A stretch of DNA of 64,000 bases from Lepidodermella squamata (taxonomy: Eukaryota; Animalia; Gastrotricha), in contig JBLDXI010000002.1 of assembly GCA_047495785.1 (NCBI GenBank), positions 2,604,001 through 2,668,000 on the forward strand, read 5' to 3'. The notes under the pieces were generated by a model, which had not been told where the DNA came from, ran no database searches, and was given only the letters and a program-made list of their open reading frames with translations. Positions 1 to 13,700 of the stretch are shown here, piece by piece. Each line of letters begins with the position of its first letter. Within the stretch, counting starts at the first letter, position 1. The position numbers and the translations under genes were made by a program.

Positions 1-1042
1 GCCTTAAAAAAACGCGCTTTTTTATTTCACTCATTAATTTGTCCAGAAATTACCGTGTTCTTTCTGGCGATGAATCATCATCAATCGGCATCATGCCTGA
101 GCCCAAGTCCGGAAACGGAGGTACGGCAAACGCCTGGTTCGTTGCATTTTCACGCGACGGGTTCCAATCGTCGGAAATCGACATGAGCAAGTCGTCCTTC
201 AAGTTGTTGAACATGGCCGATAGCGGCGAGTCAGCGCAACTCCGCGTGACAGCTACTGGCGATCGGTTGTAGCCGAGCGCGAACATTGTCGCTGAAACCG
301 GAACGTCGAGAAAACCTACAGCATTACGAGAGAAAATCAATTTCCTGTTTCATCGTGCTCATTGAAGCGTGTATTTCAGGGTTTTTTGACATTTTGCGAT
401 GGACAAAAAGAGGGACAGCCTTAATAAATTAGCGCTCACCTAAAATGAAGGAGATCATCCAAATGCTGACGACGGCTAGTTTAGCGAATCGTTTCTTTGA
501 AAGCTGTTAAATAGCAATCGATTAAAGATTGCAGAACGCAATATTGATTTCAACTCACATATTGATATTTGAGAGGGTAAATCTGAAAAATTTAAAGGAA
601 AATAATTAATTAAGATTAGCCTCGAAAATAAAGCCATTATATAGGGACAATCATAAAATAACCAGGAAAACCGGACCAAACATACCAAGCCAATAACGTG
701 ATCGACAGACATTCCGCAAAGATTGAGGAGGTTCGCGAAAAAGCCGACAAGCTGTAAACTGCGCAAAATCTGGGTGACACAAACGCCCACAGCCTCGTCA
801 TTCGCGAAAACCGGTGAAATCTGAAGGACGAATTGCAGAAGATTGATGCCGCAAATGTAAAGATCCGAAATTGTGAGTGATATCAAAAATCGCCGGTAGC
901 CTTTCAGGATGAAGTTCGATTTCATGATACCATCGAGCACAACCAGGTTACTAGCGACTGCCAGTAAGGAAATGACGTAATCGAAGAGAACAAAGACACC
1001 CTTCGGGCCTTCGAAGACTTTGTCCAAAACGCTACTCTCCAT
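1..1042 (-). CDS. Class A (rhodopsin-like) GPCR, 5' part; continues beyond window start
   Basis: ATG 1042. Exon 1 encodes TM1 (LLAVASNLVVL), TM2 (FLISLTISDL), a Cys at the top of TM3 and a DRY-like MSVDHVIGL, ending at a GTATG donor (~685). Micro-exon IYPLKYQY, then TM4 exon LSKKRFAKLAVVSIWMISFIL, then a long ECL2 exon (~318-54). Confidence 0.85.
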
Positions 1043-3290: not shown

Positions 3291-4677
3291 TTAAAATTGT
3301 GAATGGATTTCCATACAAGTTTTCGAACAGTCGGCAAAGCTGCTAAATCTGTTTGCGTTGGCGCCGCAAAGGCCGCTGGGAAGCCTGACACAGTTGCCTT
3401 GACGAACGTCATATGAGTAGATTGCGTCACATTTTCCGTGTTTCTCAACCGTGCCGGTTTCAACCGGCAACAAACACACCTTGCCGTCGTAGTTCATCGT
3501 CTCGCTGATCTGAAAGACAGAATAACATATTATGATTGTAAAAGCAGAGCGTAAAACATCGATTTCAACCTTCTTCACGATTCTTTCGTCCCGGATTCCG
3601 AGTTACAAAGAATAATTATAAAATCTCACTACAGCGTGTCCCGTAAGTAACGCAAAAAATACATGGAAAAGGGTTCAGAAACTCTAAAATGAGACGAAGT
3701 CACATCTCATGACCAGAAAATTTTAGAAAATTAAAAAAAATCACGAAAATAGTAATAAAGTATGTCACTTGTTAATGGGATTAAACAATTCCGGAAAAAA
3801 TTGGTCCTATAACGGGTAAAATACCGAAAATTACCGAACCAGTTACCATCGGGGTTTTCCGGGTTTTCTCTGGTAAATTTCTAATTTCGTCGGTTTAATC
3901 ACGGATAAAAGATGGAATATTCTCTCGGAAGGTTTAATTTTAAAGAATTAATTAAATTTCCCACAAAACACCCGAAACTGAAAAATAGTTGCGTAACTTT
4001 TGGGATACGCTGCGGTGTTATATAAAATATTGTTCAAGGCGAAAAATGCGCAAAAATATGCGGTGATAAAATTAAAAATATATATAGCAATTCCAGCTTA
4101 ATTTTTATTTTCGCCAACAAATTTAGTCTCGAATCTTGAAATTGATGATTAGTCATTTAAAAAAGTATTCAATATCGGCATTGATCTCAAATTTACATAC
4201 CGTGCATGTCGATTTGCATATTTCCGGGGTTTCGAACGAGTTCTCGTTACCGCCGCAGCCGCCGTAGTCGAATTCGATGCAGGCGTGTTGTTTTGCGTCA
4301 TAACCGTACCGCTTCTTATTCGCCGCCTGGCCTTGATAACACCGCCCGTTGTCGATAGCCAAATTGCACGGGTAGATCTCACGTTCGAGGGCCGCTGCAA
4401 GACTTGCGTCATCTTGCGCTTCGGCTACAACTTCCGGCCGGCACGTCGTCACGCATGATTTGAGGTCTTTGAAGTGATTGCGGGCATCGTAGGAAACACA
4501 CGTTCCGTAAGTGAAAGGCTGGCATCGCCCGGTTAGGCGGTTGTAGGCGTATCGGGTTACTGAAGCTCGACACAGCCCCGTAATAACAGGCTCGTTGCAT
4601 ATAGAATTCGACGATGGAACAATTTCGCAATTTACGGCAAAAATCAGCCAAGCGGAAGTAAGGATTTTTAGGTGCAT
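3291..4677 (-). CDS. Secreted protein with three Kunitz/BPTI domains (2 exons: 4677-4201, 3509-3291)
   Basis: Signal peptide MHLKILTSAWLIFAVNC. Three Kunitz Cys patterns (FTYGTC..NHF, FDYGGCGGNENSF, GLCGANANRF). Phase-0 intron gtatgt...tttcag joins the exons in frame. Domain 1 has Arg at the P1 position (GLCRA). Confidence 0.9.
3632..4012. mobile_element. Tc1/mariner-type MITE in the Kunitz intron
   Basis: 24-bp imperfect TIRs: CAGCGTGTCCCGTAAGTAACGCAA versus the reverse complement of the right end, CAGCGTATCCCAAAAGTTACGCAA (4 mismatches). TA on the left flank; no ORF. Confidence 0.65.
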
Positions 4678-4913
4678 TTTTAAATTGAATACTGACTTTT
4701 GTCTACTTTTCCACAATTTGTCTGCTGCAATAACAAGTCGTGTGCCAATTTTCAGTACGCATAATCTGCGCAACAGCAGGTATTACAGCTAGAGTAAACA
4801 GACTTTGCTCGAAGATACCGGCTAATAGGATATCCGCAAATCCATCGCCTCACGTGGCCGCGGCAATTAAAGGCCATAGCCTCAACGTCAGATCTATTAT
4901 TTTTCGATAAAAA

Positions 4914-5322
4914 ATGTTGTTGAAAACTTTAATAGCTATCTTGCTGTCTGTGACATATGGTATGTGTCCAAGCCACCAAATTGTTTCATATTATTTATAT
5001 TTTATTACCATTTATAGCAGGTGTGGATGCGAATAACAGGGTTCGAGTGATTGCAGCGCCCGAGTGTCCCGTTAAAGAACACCAAGAATACGCGATTAAA
5101 ATGACCTGGGCGGCGATAAATCGCTGGGACGCGAATGCCGCTAAAATTGCGCGCAACGTATCGGAATCGATGAACTCGCGCTTCGGCAACTACTGGGGCG
5201 TCATGGCCTTCACGCAGCCGGTGGCTGAGCATGTCGGCGCCTATTTCTGGTACAAGGGCTCGAACTGGATGCGACTCACCGACGATGTGTACACGGTCGA
5301 TATTTGGCAAAACATTTGCTAG
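4914..5322 (+). CDS. Secreted dynein-light-chain(LC8)-like / ground-like-fold protein 1 (exons 4914-4959, 5021-5322)
   Basis: Signal exon MLLKTLIAILLSVTYG, phase-1 intron gtatgt..tagcag. The mature part aligns to the LC8 pattern (IARNVSESMNSRFGNYWGVMA..GAYFWY..WMRL..VDIW). Confidence 0.75.
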
Positions 5323-5723
5323 AAAATAATTTTATTTATATTATTATTGTTATTTACACTACTTACTATATCATACATAAAATAATAAAATACAATATTT
5401 ACTTGGTTTTACTGAAAATTGACTGTACATCAATAATGACAAATGACAAATTGGGCGTGAAAATCCCTACAGTTGCTCAGGTAAAAAAATCAATGGATTT
5501 ATTGATCAGCGCTCGGCATTGTGTTGAATATTCGCGTGTACTTGTATATCGATCGACATTGCGTTAGGTCATAGTAAAAAATCCCGGGCTTTTTTATCAA
5601 TGGTGCCACATATTTTAATGATAATTTTTGTTTTATGACACCACCATTCTTGTTTTTAAGATAAATAATGTGTGTACATGGTTTCATTATTCGCTTATCT
5701 CGCCATAACTAACAACAACAAAT

Positions 5724-6107
5724 ATGCATTTAACTTGGTCGTTATTTCCACTGATTTTGGGCTACGTGTTCGTTATTTGCCAAATTTTCGACGATAATTG
5801 TCTCGTGGAGGCTGCGTTCGAGGCGAAACTCAGCTTCAACTACTCGTGCGCCGACCAGGAAAAATTGGACTTCGCCGTCGATGTTGTGACTAAGGCTTAC
5901 GCGAAGCATGAGTACAATGTCGTCGCGATCAGTAAGGAAGTCAGCGAGGCGTTCAATACGAAATTCGGGCCGTACTGGGGCGTGATAGCCTACATGACAC
6001 GGCATGCGACCAGCATCGGCGCCTACTTTTGGCACAACTCGAGCAATTATTTTCAGCTGAAGGACGACAACCTAACAATCGATATCTGGCAAAATGCGGC
6101 AGCCTAA
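5724..6107 (+). CDS. Secreted LC8-like protein 2 (single exon)
   Basis: Hydrophobic N-terminus. FAVDVVTKAYAK..ISKEVSEAFNTKFGPYWGVIA..GAYFWH..YFQL..IDIW is a clear paralog of protein 1. Confidence 0.8.
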   Translation: MHLTWSLFPLILGYVFVICQIFDDNCLVEAAFEAKLSFNYSCADQEKLDFAVDVVTKAYAKHEYNVVAISKEVSEAFNTKFGPYWGVIAYMTRHATSIGAYFWHNSSNYFQLKDDNLTIDIWQNAAA

Positions 6108-6327
6108 AACAATAACTCTACTGTTTTGACACCTTAAATGTGCCTTGTTGTCCTATAAGTCTCAATAAACATTGACGTCTCTTTTTCAAAACTGGAAATT
6201 ATCCGGACATCTAAATAAAATGCTGTCGCTGGTCATTGTTTGCTTCTGTCTTGTTTTTCCAACTTGAAAAGGATCCGGAGCTAGTTCAAAACGGCCAAAT
6301 TGCTTGTCAAGTAGCATAATTATTGGA

Positions 6328-6910
6328 ATGAAGCGCCTGTTCGCATTTATTTTCCTCACAGGTATTTTGTTATCAAATTTAAAACAGTCCTAAAAAGCCA
6401 GTTCATCTCATATGCCCTCAATGAGTTTTTACTTGATGGAATTATTCATCGGATTATCTATGATATTTCTCAGGTCCAGCGATTGTTATCTGCGCTGATT
6501 CCAATGCCCCCGGATCTGACACTACGTTCAAAACAATAGTGAATCAGAAATCAGAGCCATCAAACGGAGGAGCGTACCTACCAGGCATAGAATCTCAATC
6601 AACATCTCACAGACCCACCGTGGAGACACCTCGCTCTGAAGTAACCGTAATCGGCGGGCATCCTAAGCTTAGTGAGGAAATTAAGGCAGAAGCCATCGAT
6701 ATCGTTACGAACGCTCTGATTCATCAGAAATCAACCTTCGGTATGGCGAAGCAGATTGCTGATATTTTCAACGAGAACCACGGATTTTACTGGGGCGTTT
6801 CTGTTGGCGATCATACGCGCCTTTCGACGTATTTCTGGTACACGGGAAAAGGCTGGATACAGCTCACCAACGGCACTCTTTTGATTGACATTTGGAAGCA
6901 AGGTTGTTGA
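6328..6910 (+). CDS. Secreted LC8-like protein 3 with Ser/Thr/Pro stalk (exons 6328-6361, 6474-6910)
   Basis: Signal MKRLFAFIFLTG|PAIVICA across a phase-1 intron, in frame with ORF 6539. Domain AIDIVTNAL..MAKQIADIFNENHGFYWGVSVG..YFWY..WIQL..IDIW. Confidence 0.8.
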
Positions 6911-7018
6911 ATACAGAATTTAAATGTTTGCGAATATTTAATTCATTTATGCTAATTGATTAGTTCAGGTGCTAGTTTCATTAGTACTAACAATAAAAAC
7001 GTAATATAGGTAGTTACT

Positions 7019-9772
7019 ATGAACATGCTTTTGATACTCTGTTTCGTTTTTGGTCTAACAGTTGGGCAGGAGTCATCGCAGATCATCCGGGAGGCAAAAG
7101 CTTGCAATGATAGCCGGGAAATCTTGAGCTATTTGATGCAAATCGAGCTGGCTTTGGATGGCCAAAATGATACTCAACTGTCGTTGGGCAATAGTTCGAG
7201 AATCACCGATAACAGGTTCCTGTCACCTGTTTATACCCGCCCTAGCAAGTCGGCTCAGGCCCATGCGGAGCACTACCATGCTTTGCCAAATGGTAACCAC
7301 CCTCACGAAACCGGGGGTTGGACTTTTTCATTCTGGTTTAAAGTCGAAAAACCACCGACCTTAGTCACTCTAGCCGAACTATTAGCTCTCCATGCACCGT
7401 TGGAGATGATGAAGTTAGGCAATTGGGACGTTTATCTGTACTTATTAGAGAGAAAGCTGGTTGTTGGCCGCACTCTTTATAAAATGTATGTAGAAATCGG
7501 CAAATGGAATTTTCTAGCAGTCAGCGTAGATAAAGGGCACGCCGGAAAATTGTTCGCATATCAAAGTGACAGCACGGGGACGCTTCATTTGAATGTATTT
7601 GAAGATGGCCTATGGCTCAAAAAACTTCCCTCGATCGAGTGGGTTAACAATTCGATCAACGTAACTTGCATTTCCATGTTCGACAAAGCTTTGACAAGCT
7701 TCGAAATCGCGATGGTTCTTGCCATGTGCGACCATCAGCAAGCGTTCCGCTGCCCAGGATTCTCAATAGCTAATGTTAGCGTGAATGATCTACGCTCCGG
7801 ATTCATACCTAGGAACCGGTATAACGAAGAATTCTGTCCTTGTCGGGTCGATCGAGGTCTTGATTGGTACCAGGCTAGAAATAGTGACTGCAAGCCGATC
7901 ATCTCATACTCATACTCATACTCTTTATTTATGCAAGTTGCCTTTCGACATTTAGCATTTGGTATCAGACATCATCACAAGGCTTATGAGTCAACTATTC
8001 CCATGGTTGATGGTCGAACCTTGGTCCCCAGGCTTTGCGTACTGAGTAGCCATATCTTGATTGCCGGTGAATGGCGTCCTACACCGGGAGGGAGGAAACC
8101 GCGGTCTCGGGTGGATTTTGCTTGGCAGTGTTACCAGCAGGTACGCACTCGAGGATTGTGCCCTTGGCTCCGTAGTCGGCGACACGTCTTCCTGTCAGCT
8201 TGATTTACGGTCCCAGAAACGCCGCATTCAATGCGTAGAAGAATGATTGGTGTTGCGGTTCTGGGGATTGAACCCGTGCCTCTTCGCCGCCAGTGAGGTG
8301 CTTGGACCGCTCGACCACTTGCTCCCCCTGATCTCACCCCCTGGACCTTACGGGCTCAATGCTACTTCATTTGGCCAATGTTTTCTCGAAGTGGCAAGTC
8401 ATTTTGAAATGGTCGGCAAATTGTTCTCCCCGGAAATCGCAGGGACGATAATCACGGATAAGACTCAGTCTTTTACCTACACACTGTTTTATTACTTTTC
8501 TGAAGAAAAAACACAGAGTTTTGTCACTGAAATATAAAAAGAAACGTGAGACTTCATTGGACAACATCGGGAAAACGCGGAAACTTCACTTCATTCAAGT
8601 AAAGCGCGATAAGATGACGCTCAGTAAGCAGCATCGTCAGTCTTACAGAACCTTTGCTATAATTGACGCACCAGAGCCTGGGAAATGGAATTTCATTGCA
8701 ATGACGTATGGGTGGCCGACGGATACATTGAAGTATTATAAGGGAATCGAACCCAACTTCGACCCAGTGTTGATCTACTCTGGCAAAATAGGCTCCCCAG
8801 TATGGGGGGAATGGACAGGCAATTCAAGTATCCCATGGAATCCATTTGATGGCTTACTAACAGCTTATTCCTGTGTTTCAAAATACGGCACAAACCTGGC
8901 ACTTCAGGATATAAAAGTGATAATCGATGAATGCCGACGCATGTTGGTTCCAAGCACGTTGGTGACCGTCAATCGAACTGATGATGTAACACTAAATCCG
9001 TTGCCCAGAGATTGTCAGGTATTGGTTATGCGAACTAATTATATATGTAAAAATATGCAAGCTTGCAATTTTTAGGATTCTGCAGATTCGAGTATAAAAT
9101 TCGAGGAGAGTTTGTTCGCACTGTACGGCCATTTCACTTTTCTCGAGGCCAACGAAGCATGTAAACAATACGGTGGACACCTTGCCTTGTCAATCGATAA
9201 AAAAAATGCTGGTGATTTGAGAGACTCTCTGTTAATCGATTCAAGTAAGTAAAAATGACATTTTCTTCATTTTTTTACGGTGTGTGGATTTTCGTAAGAG
9301 TTTTATTGGGTCGGTGGCTATGAGGATAACCAGGGCGAAGTCCGTTGGTTGGACGGTACCTGTACCAAACCGGTCACCTGGCGTAAGCCCCTTCAGCCCC
9401 GTCCTGATCTTCCTTGTATCGCTATAAATGCTGGCAAACTATACGAAGCAAGTTGCCGAAAAGATACATTGAACGCTTTGTGCCAAAGACGTCTTATCAG
9501 AAACAACCTCATGGAAAATTTTGCAAACTACAAATTTTATCAAGCGGAGGATCTCGGGAATCTAACAGAAAAAGAAGGGAGAACTATTTGCGAAGAGCAA
9601 GGGGCTCGACTAGCGGCATTCAGCTACATCGAATCTCAATCCTTTGTCGCATTTAATCTTTCATCGATATTCAACTTATCGCAGACTGATGGAGACTTCA
9701 AGTGCTTGTTCCACAAGTCCCTTCGACAGTTTCCGCCAGACGATCCAGACTGCTCAACTCAGCGAATGGTCT
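7019..9772 (+). pseudogene. Copy 1 of LamG/pentraxin-C-type-lectin receptor; disrupted, lacks TM and kinase
   Basis: Collinear with 10793-13139. Interrupted by a 424-bp SINE (7907-8330), frameshifted near 8505-8512, and homology stops at 9772, before the TM. Confidence 0.8.
7907..8330 (-). mobile_element. tRNA-derived SINE inserted in an exon
   Basis: Absent from paralog copy 2 (GATCTCACCCCCTGG). Flanked by direct repeat ATCTCA (7901-7906, 8331-8336). Minus-strand head has Pol III A box TGGTCGAGCGG (8317-8307) and B box GGTTCAATCCC (8274-8264). 3' end is AATAAA followed by a (GAGTAT)n tail. Confidence 0.85.
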
Positions 9773-10585: not shown

Positions 10586-10676
10586 GCCTTTCGTGTATTT
10601 CTGGTACACGGGGAGGGCTGGATACAGCTCACCAACGGCACTCTTTTGTTGATTGACATTTGGAAGCAAGGTTGCA
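10586..10676 (+). pseudogene. Duplicated 3' fragment of LC8-like gene 3
   Basis: Near-identical to 6819-6907 (TATTTCTGGTACACGGG...GACATTTGGAAGCAAGGTTG) with small indels; no 5' part. Confidence 0.85.
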
Positions 10677-10792
10677 AAATACAGAATTTTAATAGTTTTG
10701 CTGTTTACGACTATTTAATTCATTTATGCTAATTGATTCGTCCAGGAGTTAGTTTCATTAGTATACTAACAATAAAAACGAAAAATAGTTAC

Positions 10793-13700
10793 TATGAAAA
10801 TGATTTTGGCACTTTGTTTCATTCTTGCTCTTACAGTTGAACTGCAGTCATCGCAGAGCATCCGGGAGGTAGAAGCTTGCCACAAAGTCGTGACATCTTG
10901 ATCCATTTGATGCGGTTTGAGCTGGCTTTGGATGGCCGAGATGATAATACGCAACAGTCGCTGGGCAATAGTTCGAGAATCGCCGACTACAGGTTCCTGT
11001 CCCCGGTTTATACCCGCCTCGACAACTCAGCTCAGGCCCATGTGCAGTACTACCGCGTTTTGCCACACGGGAACCACCCAGCCCCTCACGAAACCGGGGG
11101 TCGGACTTTTTCATTCTGGTTTAATGTCGAAGAACAGCCGCTCATCGTATCCAAACCGTTGAGCATAATGACAGCAGGCTATTGGGACGTTCATCTGGAC
11201 TTTTTAATGAGACCGGGTGGAGCCACGCTGGTTTTGGGCAGTGAGGGGTTCTCGAAACAAAATGTAAAAATCGGCAATTGGAATTTTCTAGCAATCACCC
11301 TGAAGGAATCTGGAGCAGTGTTTGCTTATCAAGGTGACAGCACTGGTAAGCTTCATTTGAATGTATTTCGAGATGGAGGATTGCCTAAAAAACTTCATTC
11401 GATTGAGTTGGTTAAAAATGTGATCAACGTAACTTGCATTTCCATGTTCGACAAAGCATTGACAAGCTTCGATATTGCGATGTTGTTTAACATGTGTGAT
11501 CATCAACAAGAAATGAATCGCTGCCCCGAATTCTCACTGGCTAATGTTAGCTTGCATGATCGACGCATCGAATTCATACCCAGGGTTAGATACAACGAAG
11601 TATTCTACCGTTTTAGGGGAGATGAATATAATCCTTGGTACGAGGTTGAAAAAAGTGGCTGCGAGCTGATGATCTCACCCCCTGGACCTTACGGACTCAG
11701 TGCAACCTCATTTGGACATTGTTTTCTCGAGGTGATAAGTCAATCTAGAGGTGGAGTGAGCAGCAAATTGTTCTCACCAACAATCGCTGGGGCGATAGTT
11801 ATGGATAAAACTCAGTCTTTCACCTACACACTCTTTTATTTCTTTTCTGAAAAACACACTCACAGAGTTTTGTCGCTGAAATCTCGCGACGAACCTGAGA
11901 TGTCATTGGAGTTACATTACGACGGGAAAACGCGGAAGCTTCACTTCGTGCAAGTGAAGCAAGTTGAGATCGTGTTTCGCAAGCAGCAACCGTTTTACAG
12001 ATCTCTTGTTGTAATTGACGCCCCGGAACCTGGAAAATGGAATTTTCTTTCAATGACGTATGATTGGCTGACGGATACTTTAAAGTGTTACAAGGGAATC
12101 GAACCCAAATTCGACCCAGTGTTGATCCACTCTGGCAAAGTAGGCTCCCCAGTATGGGCGGAATGGATGGTCAATTCAAGTACCCCGTGGAATCCATCTA
12201 TTGGATTACGTGGATTACAAACCGCTTATTCCTGTGTTTTCAAATATGGCACAAACCTGGCACTTCAGGATATAAAGGCGATAATCAGAGAGTGCCGACG
12301 CAAGTTGGTTGGTGGGCTAAACATTGTGGTGACCGTCAATCGAACTTATGATGTAACGCTGAATCCGTTGCCCAGAGATTGTCAGGTAACGGTGACGCGA
12401 ACCAATTACATGGGATATTACATAAGCTTGCAATTATTAGGATACTACAGATTCGAAATTCGAGGGTAGTTTGTTCGCACTGTACGGCCACTTCACATTT
12501 CTCGAGGCCAACGATGCGTGTAAGTATTACGGTGGACACCTTGCCACGTCGATTGACAAAAGAAAAGATTTGATAGACTCCTTGCTAATCGATTCAAGTA
12601 AGTAAACAGTATATTTTTAATCAATTTTTTTACGATAAGTGGGTTTTCGCAAGAGTTTTATTGGATCGGTGGCTATCTGGATGGCCCGGGCGAAGTCCGT
12701 TGGCTTGACGGTACCTGTATCAAATCGGCCACCAGGCGTAAAACAAATCAGTCCCATACTGATTCTTTTTGTATCGCTATAAAAGCTGACAATCTATACG
12801 ATGCAAGCTGCCGAAAAGATACATTGAACGCTTTGTGCCAAAGAAGTGTTGTCAGCAACAACCTGGTGGAAACATCTTCAAGCTACAAATTATTTCAAGT
12901 GGAGGATCGCGGGAATGTCACAGAGAAAGATGGGAGAGCTATTTGCGAAGAGCAAGGGGCTCGGCTAGCGGCATTCAACTCTATCGAATCTCAATCCTTC
13001 GCGATCAAGGCAGCCGCATTGGATCTTTCAACGAAAGTCAACTTATCCCAGACTGATGGAGATTTCAAGTGCTTGTTCCACAAGTCCCTTCGACAGTTTC
13101 CGCCAGACGATCCAGACTGCTCAACTCAGCGAATGGTCTTATGTGAAATGTTGATGCTGGACACATCTTCAACGTCCAAAAATCTCGTCTTTTTGGACAC
13201 GAGTATCATCGGATTTATAATGTTCTTAGTACTAATGGCATTGCTTATAGGGATCCTGATTCAACAAAATGGCTGCCATAGAATATTCAAGAGGGAAGAC
13301 CCTAACTCAAAAAGAGATTAGATGGATATTGATTGTAGCCAGATTTCTATCAACAAAGACGTCAAATTAGGAAGCGGTGCTTATGGACATGTGTTTCTAG
13401 GCAACGTTTTGCTGAAGGGGAAGCTAAAAGACAGAATTTCGGGTCAAGTCGCTATCAAGGTGCTACCAGAATTCCCGACGGAAACTCAGAGAATGGCTTT
13501 CGTCAAAGAAATAGTCTTAATGAAGAAAATGATGGATGTCTGCGGGCACCATCCTAACATTCTAGCACTCCTTGCTTGCGTTCCGCCGTCTGAAAAGAAC
13601 GAGAAGAAAAAGACTATGGATATGGCAATAGTGACTGAACTTTGCCAATACGGCTCTCTAAAATTCTTCCTCCCCAGTTTCGATAGCGATCGTTCCAGGA

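Follow-up and report, generated by a model that had tools for sequence, protein, structure and literature searches.

Can the fold of the LC8 dynein light chain serve outside the cell? LC8 is among the most conserved of eukaryotic proteins, and is regarded as a strictly cytosolic and nuclear hub. A locus of the gastrotrich Lepidodermella squamata raises the question. It lies in a stretch of 64,000 nucleotides, here called the window, in which an earlier note made from the sequence alone had pointed to three tandem paralogs with an LC8-like layout, all carrying N-terminal leaders, had suggested a role as ligand, effector or matrix cross-linker outside the cell, and had named the nematode Ground-like domain as an alternative identity. 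Here we ask what these proteins are, where they go, and what their LC8-like domain may do there.

Results

Three tandem genes with intact frames

The three paralogs, g1, g2 and g3, are confirmed as co-oriented tandem genes at window 4914-6910 (forward strand), each encoding a hydrophobic N-terminal leader and then an LC8/Dynein_light-like domain of about 90 residues (Table 1). The paralog domains are 35-41% identical over the BLASTP local alignments (E 1e-25 between g1 and g2, 2e-15 between g2 and g3) and share the invariant motifs G.YWG, YFW and D(I/V)W. All three reading frames are intact, and a profile of the trio, run against the 121-Mb genome, found these three as its only strong members. 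From these sequence comparisons we conclude that g1, g2 and g3 are tandem duplicates.

Base composition differs between exons and the rest of the locus: GC content is 48-54% in exons versus 25-36% in introns and spacers of the locus, and 0.54 in g1 exon 2 versus 0.26 in the g1 intron. The splice sites bear out most of what had been proposed. The g3 intron appears as drawn, at 6362-6473, with GT..AG ends and phase 1; the g1 intron, drawn at 4960-5020, holds for its start, while its acceptor may fall at either 5017 or 5020. The end of this intron (window 5014-5022) is a TAG-CAG tandem acceptor, which allows for two products that differ by one residue where the leader ends. The g2 gene was modelled from its first in-frame ATG, and its next in-frame Met comes only in mid-domain.

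Table 1. Coordinates, in the window, of the trio genes and associated features
Feature	Position	Strand	Remarks
g1 exon 1	4914..4959	+	start codon, 15 codons + 1 nt, hydrophobic leader core; donor G|GTATGT, phase 1
g1 intron	4960..5020	+	alternative acceptors AG 5016-5017 or AG 5019-5020, frame kept with either; GC 0.26
g1 exon 2	5021..5322 (start possibly 5018)	+	leader end and LC8-like domain; stop 5320-5322
AATAAA 3' of g1	5384..5389	+	
g2 single exon	5724..6107	+	leader of about 20 uncharged residues and LC8-like domain 5820-6104; from first in-frame ATG
AATAAA 3' of g2	6164..6169	+	
g3 exon 1	6328..6361	+	ATG 6328; Met-Lys-Arg and hydrophobic core, 11 codons + 1 nt; donor ACAG|GT
g3 intron	6362..6473	+	GT..AG, phase 1; GC 0.30
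g3 exon 2	6474..6910	+	leader end, low-confidence linker of about 50 residues, LC8-like domain 6632-6907
AATAAA 3' of g3	6992..6997	+	21 nt upstream of next gene's ATG 7019
Relic of last ~90 coding bases of g3 and 3' flank	10586..10791	+	carried along by tandem segmental duplication

The 3' end of g3 has been caught up in a tandem segmental duplication, in which window 6819-7340 recurs at 10586-11110. From g3 the duplicated unit takes the final ~90 bases of coding sequence together with the 3' flank, and from the following gene (ATG 7019) its 5' part. One breakpoint falls inside the last exon of g3, and the duplicate adjoins, upstream, a receptor-kinase gene (ATG about 10795). Identity is 85% over 6819-7012 and, as column identity in the DNA alignment, 88% from 6985 onward. 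In the kinase-side copy 1 nt is deleted shortly downstream of the start, and the start of the kinase gene is frame-broken. A third copy of the g3 3' fragment (L009/L031, G000:C9:5067052-5067233, minus strand) is 75% identical and decayed, with in-frame stops. We rejected a mobile element or retrocopy as the source of the 10586-10791 fragment, because the genome has no more than three copies and the duplicated stretch extends into the next gene.

Genes are closely packed here. The 21-nt spacing from AATAAA to ATG after g3 (6992-7021) is found also in the duplicate, at 10770-10797, and so short a distance between genes on the same strand would be in keeping with polycistronic transcription and trans-splicing. 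On the other side of the trio, head-to-head with g1, is a gene with two Kunitz/BPTI inhibitor domains (window 4153-4773, minus strand; E 1e-26), and the stretch is therefore dense in secreted-protein genes.

Homology to LC8 in sequence and predicted fold

Dynein_light was the sole Pfam match for each of the three proteins, at 18.0 bits for g1 (E 4e-3), 25.4 bits for g2 (E 2e-5) and 24.1 bits for g3 (E 5e-5). All three scores are under the curated Dynein_light (PF01221) cut-off of 29.1 bits; P0002, the ortholog of g3, is above it at 34.8 bits. A six-member family profile matched about 35 distinct LC8 sequences in the PDB (E 4e-5 to 1e-3) over the full domain (profile positions 5-91 of 94), and hhalign against this genome's own canonical light chains gave a probability of 97.5% and an E value of 7.5e-12. 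Profile-level similarity is significant across the whole domain, which places the trio family by homology in the LC8-fold superfamily. The nearest clusters in the ESM Atlas, at 0.87-0.90, were nematode clusters named “Secreted protein” and in part Dynein_light; these are leads only.

The predicted structures agree. All AlphaFold predictions were of monomers. The model of the g2 domain (pLDDT 76, pTM 0.75) has the order strand, helix, helix, four strands; its best matches in Foldseek, at least 40 of them, were all LC8, and VIA-align superposed it on LC8 with Z 12.1 and an rmsd of 2.5 Å over 82 of 86 residues, compared with Z 9-10 for fluke DLC-like domains and Z 6-7 for Tctex. The model of the g3 exon-2 product begins with a 50-residue linker at low confidence, followed by the domain at pLDDT 85-94, whose superposition on the LC8 chains of dimeric structures gives TM 0.86-0.90 with an rmsd of 1.6-1.8 Å; the third strand is the low-confidence part of this monomer model. 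Both predicted domains have the one strand, two helices and four strands of the LC8 fold and can be superposed on it. The LC8-like layout reported for the three paralogs is thus borne out by profile, by hhalign and by the AlphaFold models, with an LC8 fold predicted for g2 and g3. We conclude that these are very likely real genes and homologs of LC8.

These searches also decide against membership of the Ground-like (hedgehog-related) domain family of nematodes, PF04155. The only point in its favour is that both are small and, in the trio by prediction, secreted. Pfam gave no Ground-like match at E <= 10, fold and profile searches returned LC8 only, the mature proteins have 0-3 cysteines at positions that are not conserved, and a literature search found no paper linking Ground-like with LC8. 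We rejected this identity, the least probable of those we weighed.

Close relatives and a wider leader-bearing family

Close relatives are few. A HMMER scan of 1.84 billion protein representatives gave 20 matches at E <= 1e-3, among them only two close relatives: P0001 (93 aa, 40% identical to g1) and P0002 (136 aa, 51% identical to g3), both from environmental or run-level assemblies. These orthologs, at 40-51% identity, have the same invariant residues. A word-index protein search with g2 found no relatives, an exact look-up of g2 in public assemblies returned no record, and a metagenome contig scan with g3 and its ortholog gave 161 pattern matches, none of which was a relative.

The locus itself has a counterpart. 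A class A GPCR gene beside the trio (window 662-1030, minus strand) is 61% identical to one at L011:590-994 (minus strand), in the same relative orientation to the LC8-like gene. Since this neighbour is conserved, the trio locus is syntenic with L011; and since identity is 40% for the LC8-like gene versus 61% for the GPCR, the LC8-like gene is the faster-evolving of the two.

More distant matches to the trio profile include P0008, P0016 and P0017 (E 1e-7 to 2e-4), which carry a leader and two Dynein_light domains per chain (80-111 bits). They come from environmental eukaryotes and are annotated “hypothetical protein”; the cluster of P0017 derives from Sphagnum (peat-moss) metagenomes (PMC9584203). 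The trio is therefore, as judged by sequence, no isolated oddity but one branch of a wider leader-bearing LC8-like set, found in this genome and in environmental eukaryotes. We found no description of signal-peptide-bearing LC8-like proteins in the literature; a nematode infection-gene paper and a dung-beetle paper, which came up as mentioning dynein light chains together with signal peptides, both concern ordinary cytosolic light chains.

Further diverged LC8-like domains occur elsewhere in the genome. Two near-identical loci, L005 (G000:C42:1605879-1606157) and L007 (G000:C85:163572-163850), are probably two haplotypes. The product of either locus is about 200 residues long and has a leader, then an LC8-like domain that clears the Pfam cut-off (33.8 bits), and an acidic C-terminal tail. 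At L021-L023 and L026 (G000:C1:1143697-1150432, minus strand) diverged LC8-like domains stand in tandem arrays joined by Thr/Ser/Pro-rich or Ala-Pro-rich linkers, and at L024 (C34) and L027 (C38) they follow N-terminal hydrophobic leaders.

N-terminal leaders and predicted export

By inspection and hydrophobicity all three proteins begin with what appears to be the layout of a signal peptide: a polar start, a hydrophobic core and then small residues. Leader exons and main exons were examined separately. The best 8-residue Kyte-Doolittle means of the three leaders are 2.7-3.2, the highest being the core in g1 at 3.2, whose mini-exon gives a hydrophobic start of 15 residues; the unspliced alternative for g1, from ATG 4957, is also hydrophobic. 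The leader of g2 is contiguous with its domain. Exon 2 of g3 has no usable in-frame Met, and after the junction it reads Gly-Pro-Ala followed by more hydrophobic residues. The mature parts contain N-glycosylation sequons, one in g1, three in g2 and one in g3, and the NGT sequon of g3 recurs in P0002.

The strongest argument for the leaders is the comparison of the leader exon across species. In P0021 (L011) and P0001 (L040-42) an upstream exon ends in the same ACAG|GT junction as in g3, with a conserved AG acceptor and a phase-1 intron after the hydrophobic core. Between L011 and L040-42 the leader exon differs by two 3-nt, in-frame indels, and the intron by a 13-nt indel and more substitutions. 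In P0002 (L012) an open frame reaches back to a phase-1 acceptor, and exon 2 begins with sequence that matches g3. The design of leader exon and phase-1 intron is thus conserved in relatives. Leaders had been claimed for all three proteins, on small exons in two of them, and both the hydrophobic cores and the exon design kept in relatives uphold that claim as a prediction.

This comparison bears on the objection that the leaders are artefacts of gene modelling, and the genes no more than cytosolic dynein light chains of the ordinary kind, or dead duplicates. The sub-threshold Pfam scores would fit such a reading. The genome, however, has its canonical light chains elsewhere: an LC8 gene that scores 148 bits and hardly differs from the animal consensus, and a DNAL4-like gene at 98 bits, both on contigs other than that of the trio and both without a leader. 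The sole start codon of g2 yields the leader, and in other species the leader exon has been kept as coding sequence. Moreover, the trio frames are intact, whereas in the true relics, at 10586-10675 and on C9, the frame or the stop codon is gone. We regard this objection as very improbable.

A further possibility is that the proteins enter the secretory pathway and are not released: with the leaders as uncleaved signal anchors, or with the proteins held in the lumen of an organelle, the LC8-like domain would sit at a membrane surface or in secretory granules. The leader of g2, with its ~20 uncharged residues, could be such an anchor. The hydrophobic cores of g1 and g3, however, are just ~7-10 residues long and are followed by small residues or Gly-Pro, and inspection of all three sequences found no C-terminal retention or anchor signal, whether a retention motif or a hydrophobic tail. 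Retention is therefore improbable as a general account, and even so the domain would face the lumen or the outside. That the domain is extracellular or lumenal we consider quite likely.

A remodelled ligand groove

LC8 binds its ligands in a groove lined by Phe62, Tyr65, Phe73, Tyr75 and Tyr77, with Thr67 hydrogen-bonding the ligand (PMC3078936). We mapped the trio family to LC8 numbering with HMMER and hhalign, which agree. Trp54 and Tyr65 are kept throughout, and Gly63 in four of the six aligned sequences, with Ser in g3 and its ortholog. The other positions have changed: His55 to Gly or Ala, Phe62 to Ile, Val or Leu, Val66 to Phe, Thr67 to Trp, Phe73 to Trp or Tyr, Tyr75 to Gln or Arg, Tyr77 to Thr, Lys or Phe, Leu84 to an invariant Asp, and Phe86 to Trp. 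Three of the five groove-lining aromatics are lost, Phe62 to aliphatic residues and Tyr75 and Tyr77 to polar ones; of the TQT groove of a functional LC8/DYNLL hub, just Tyr65 and an aromatic at position 73 remain. The invariant YFW and D(I/V)W motifs correspond to LC8 positions 65-67 and 84-86, on that face of the sheet with which LC8 pairs and contacts its ligands.

From this mapping it follows that the scaffold and part of the groove survive, and that the surface that reads TQT is gone. With Thr67 replaced by Trp, Leu84 by Asp and Phe86 by Trp, and with Tyr75 and Tyr77 lost, the proteins are therefore no TQT-binding hub. The hub is also cytosolic and free of a leader, and hydrophobic N-terminal leaders are found in all three of the proteins here. 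The trio thus departs, on sequence grounds, from three features that define the LC8 hub: the Pfam cut-off, the groove residues and, by prediction, the cytosolic location.

Several observations bear on whether the proteins pair as LC8 does. The two-domain secreted relatives, the dimer-state chain conformation of the g3 model and the uncertainty of the third strand in a monomer model are all consistent with pairing, as is the retention of Tyr65 and of an aromatic at 73. Against pairing counts the change of His55 to Gly or Ala, as His55 is the centre of the LC8 dimer. In addition, g1, g2 and P0001 have three extra hinge residues before the swapped strand, absent from g3 and P0002; in g1 and g2 this longer hinge could let the strand fold back, giving a monomer.

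These observations are the basis of the main rival explanation, in which the proteins are secreted monomeric LC8-fold binders: the third strand would fold back on its own sheet, and the face formed by Tyr, two Trp and Asp would bind a sugar or small ligand. Clusters of aromatic and acidic residues are typical of carbohydrate sites, and by this analogy the YFW and D(I/V)W residues, mapped as they are to the face for pairing and ligand contact, could form one; the change at His55 and the three-residue hinge insertion in g1, g2 and P0001 would fit a monomer as well. However, g3 and P0002 have the same invariant residues without the insertion, the g3 model follows a dimer-state LC8 chain at 1.6 Å, and the two-domain secreted relatives suggest that pairing has been retained. 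We judge the monomeric binder unlikely.

Discussion

Much-diverged copies of LC8, each with an export signal in front, suggest that the LC8 shape has been put to a new use outside the cell. The explanation that we favour, and hold to be probable, is that each gene encodes a small soluble protein whose LC8/DYNLL-fold domain has diverged strongly and which an N-terminal signal sequence routes to the secretory pathway. The leaders would be cleaved and the proteins exported. Outside the cell they would most likely pair as LC8 does, via the swapped third strand, as homodimers or as heterodimers among the paralogs, and the two edge grooves of the dimer could then clamp other extracellular proteins by taking up their extended segments as added strands. 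Such dimers would be small bivalent adaptors or cross-linkers, with a motif specificity that would differ from the cytosolic TQT motif. We propose this dimeric peptide clamp of new specificity only tentatively; peptide clamping is not assured, because groove aromatics have been lost and Leu84 has become Asp.

More speculatively, the trio may belong to a hitherto undescribed branch of the LC8 fold that works outside the cells of small invertebrates, with modules used alone, in tandem, or fused to other secreted domains. As bivalent clamps these might bring order to disordered extracellular proteins, for example those of cuticle, mucus or adhesive secretions, and so do outside the cell what the LC8 dimerisation hub does in the cytosol, with a new recognition motif. 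If so, a peptide-clamping scaffold can move to the extracellular space by keeping its fold, adding export signals, losing its TQT groove and duplicating in tandem. It would also make available, for study or engineering, a small binding module that is largely free of cysteine and suited to the outside of the cell, and would open a way into the secreted biology of animals about which little is known.

LC8/DYNLL itself is among the closest known systems. The trio shares with it homologous sequence, the same predicted fold, and the residues Trp54, Tyr65 and an aromatic at 73, with Gly63 in four of six family sequences. In contrast to LC8, the trio has an export leader, N-glycosylation sequons, a sub-cut-off Pfam score and, in g1 and g2, a longer hinge, and its genes are tandem and fast-evolving. 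Tctex/DYNLT has a related alpha/beta dimer fold, but it scores far lower in structure (Z 6-7) and does not match in sequence.

Diverged LC8-like domains have been put to use away from dynein before, and at the body surface, in the flatworm tegumental allergen-like and calcium-binding proteins (TAL/CaBP; PDB 5fx0, 9voa and 5x2d). The structural match to the g2 model (Z 9-10) is to their DLC-like domain only. These flatworm proteins are described as having N-terminal EF-hands and no signal peptide, and as lying inside the tegument (PMC3317908). Pfam found no EF-hand match in the trio, and we ruled out the flatworm EF-hand/DLC type for proteins that have a leader and no EF-hand. P0008, P0016 and P0017 differ from the trio in having two clear Dynein_light domains per chain without the YFW and DIW signature, but they share its plan of a hydrophobic leader followed by one or more LC8-like domains, a theme that recurs in other genes of this genome.
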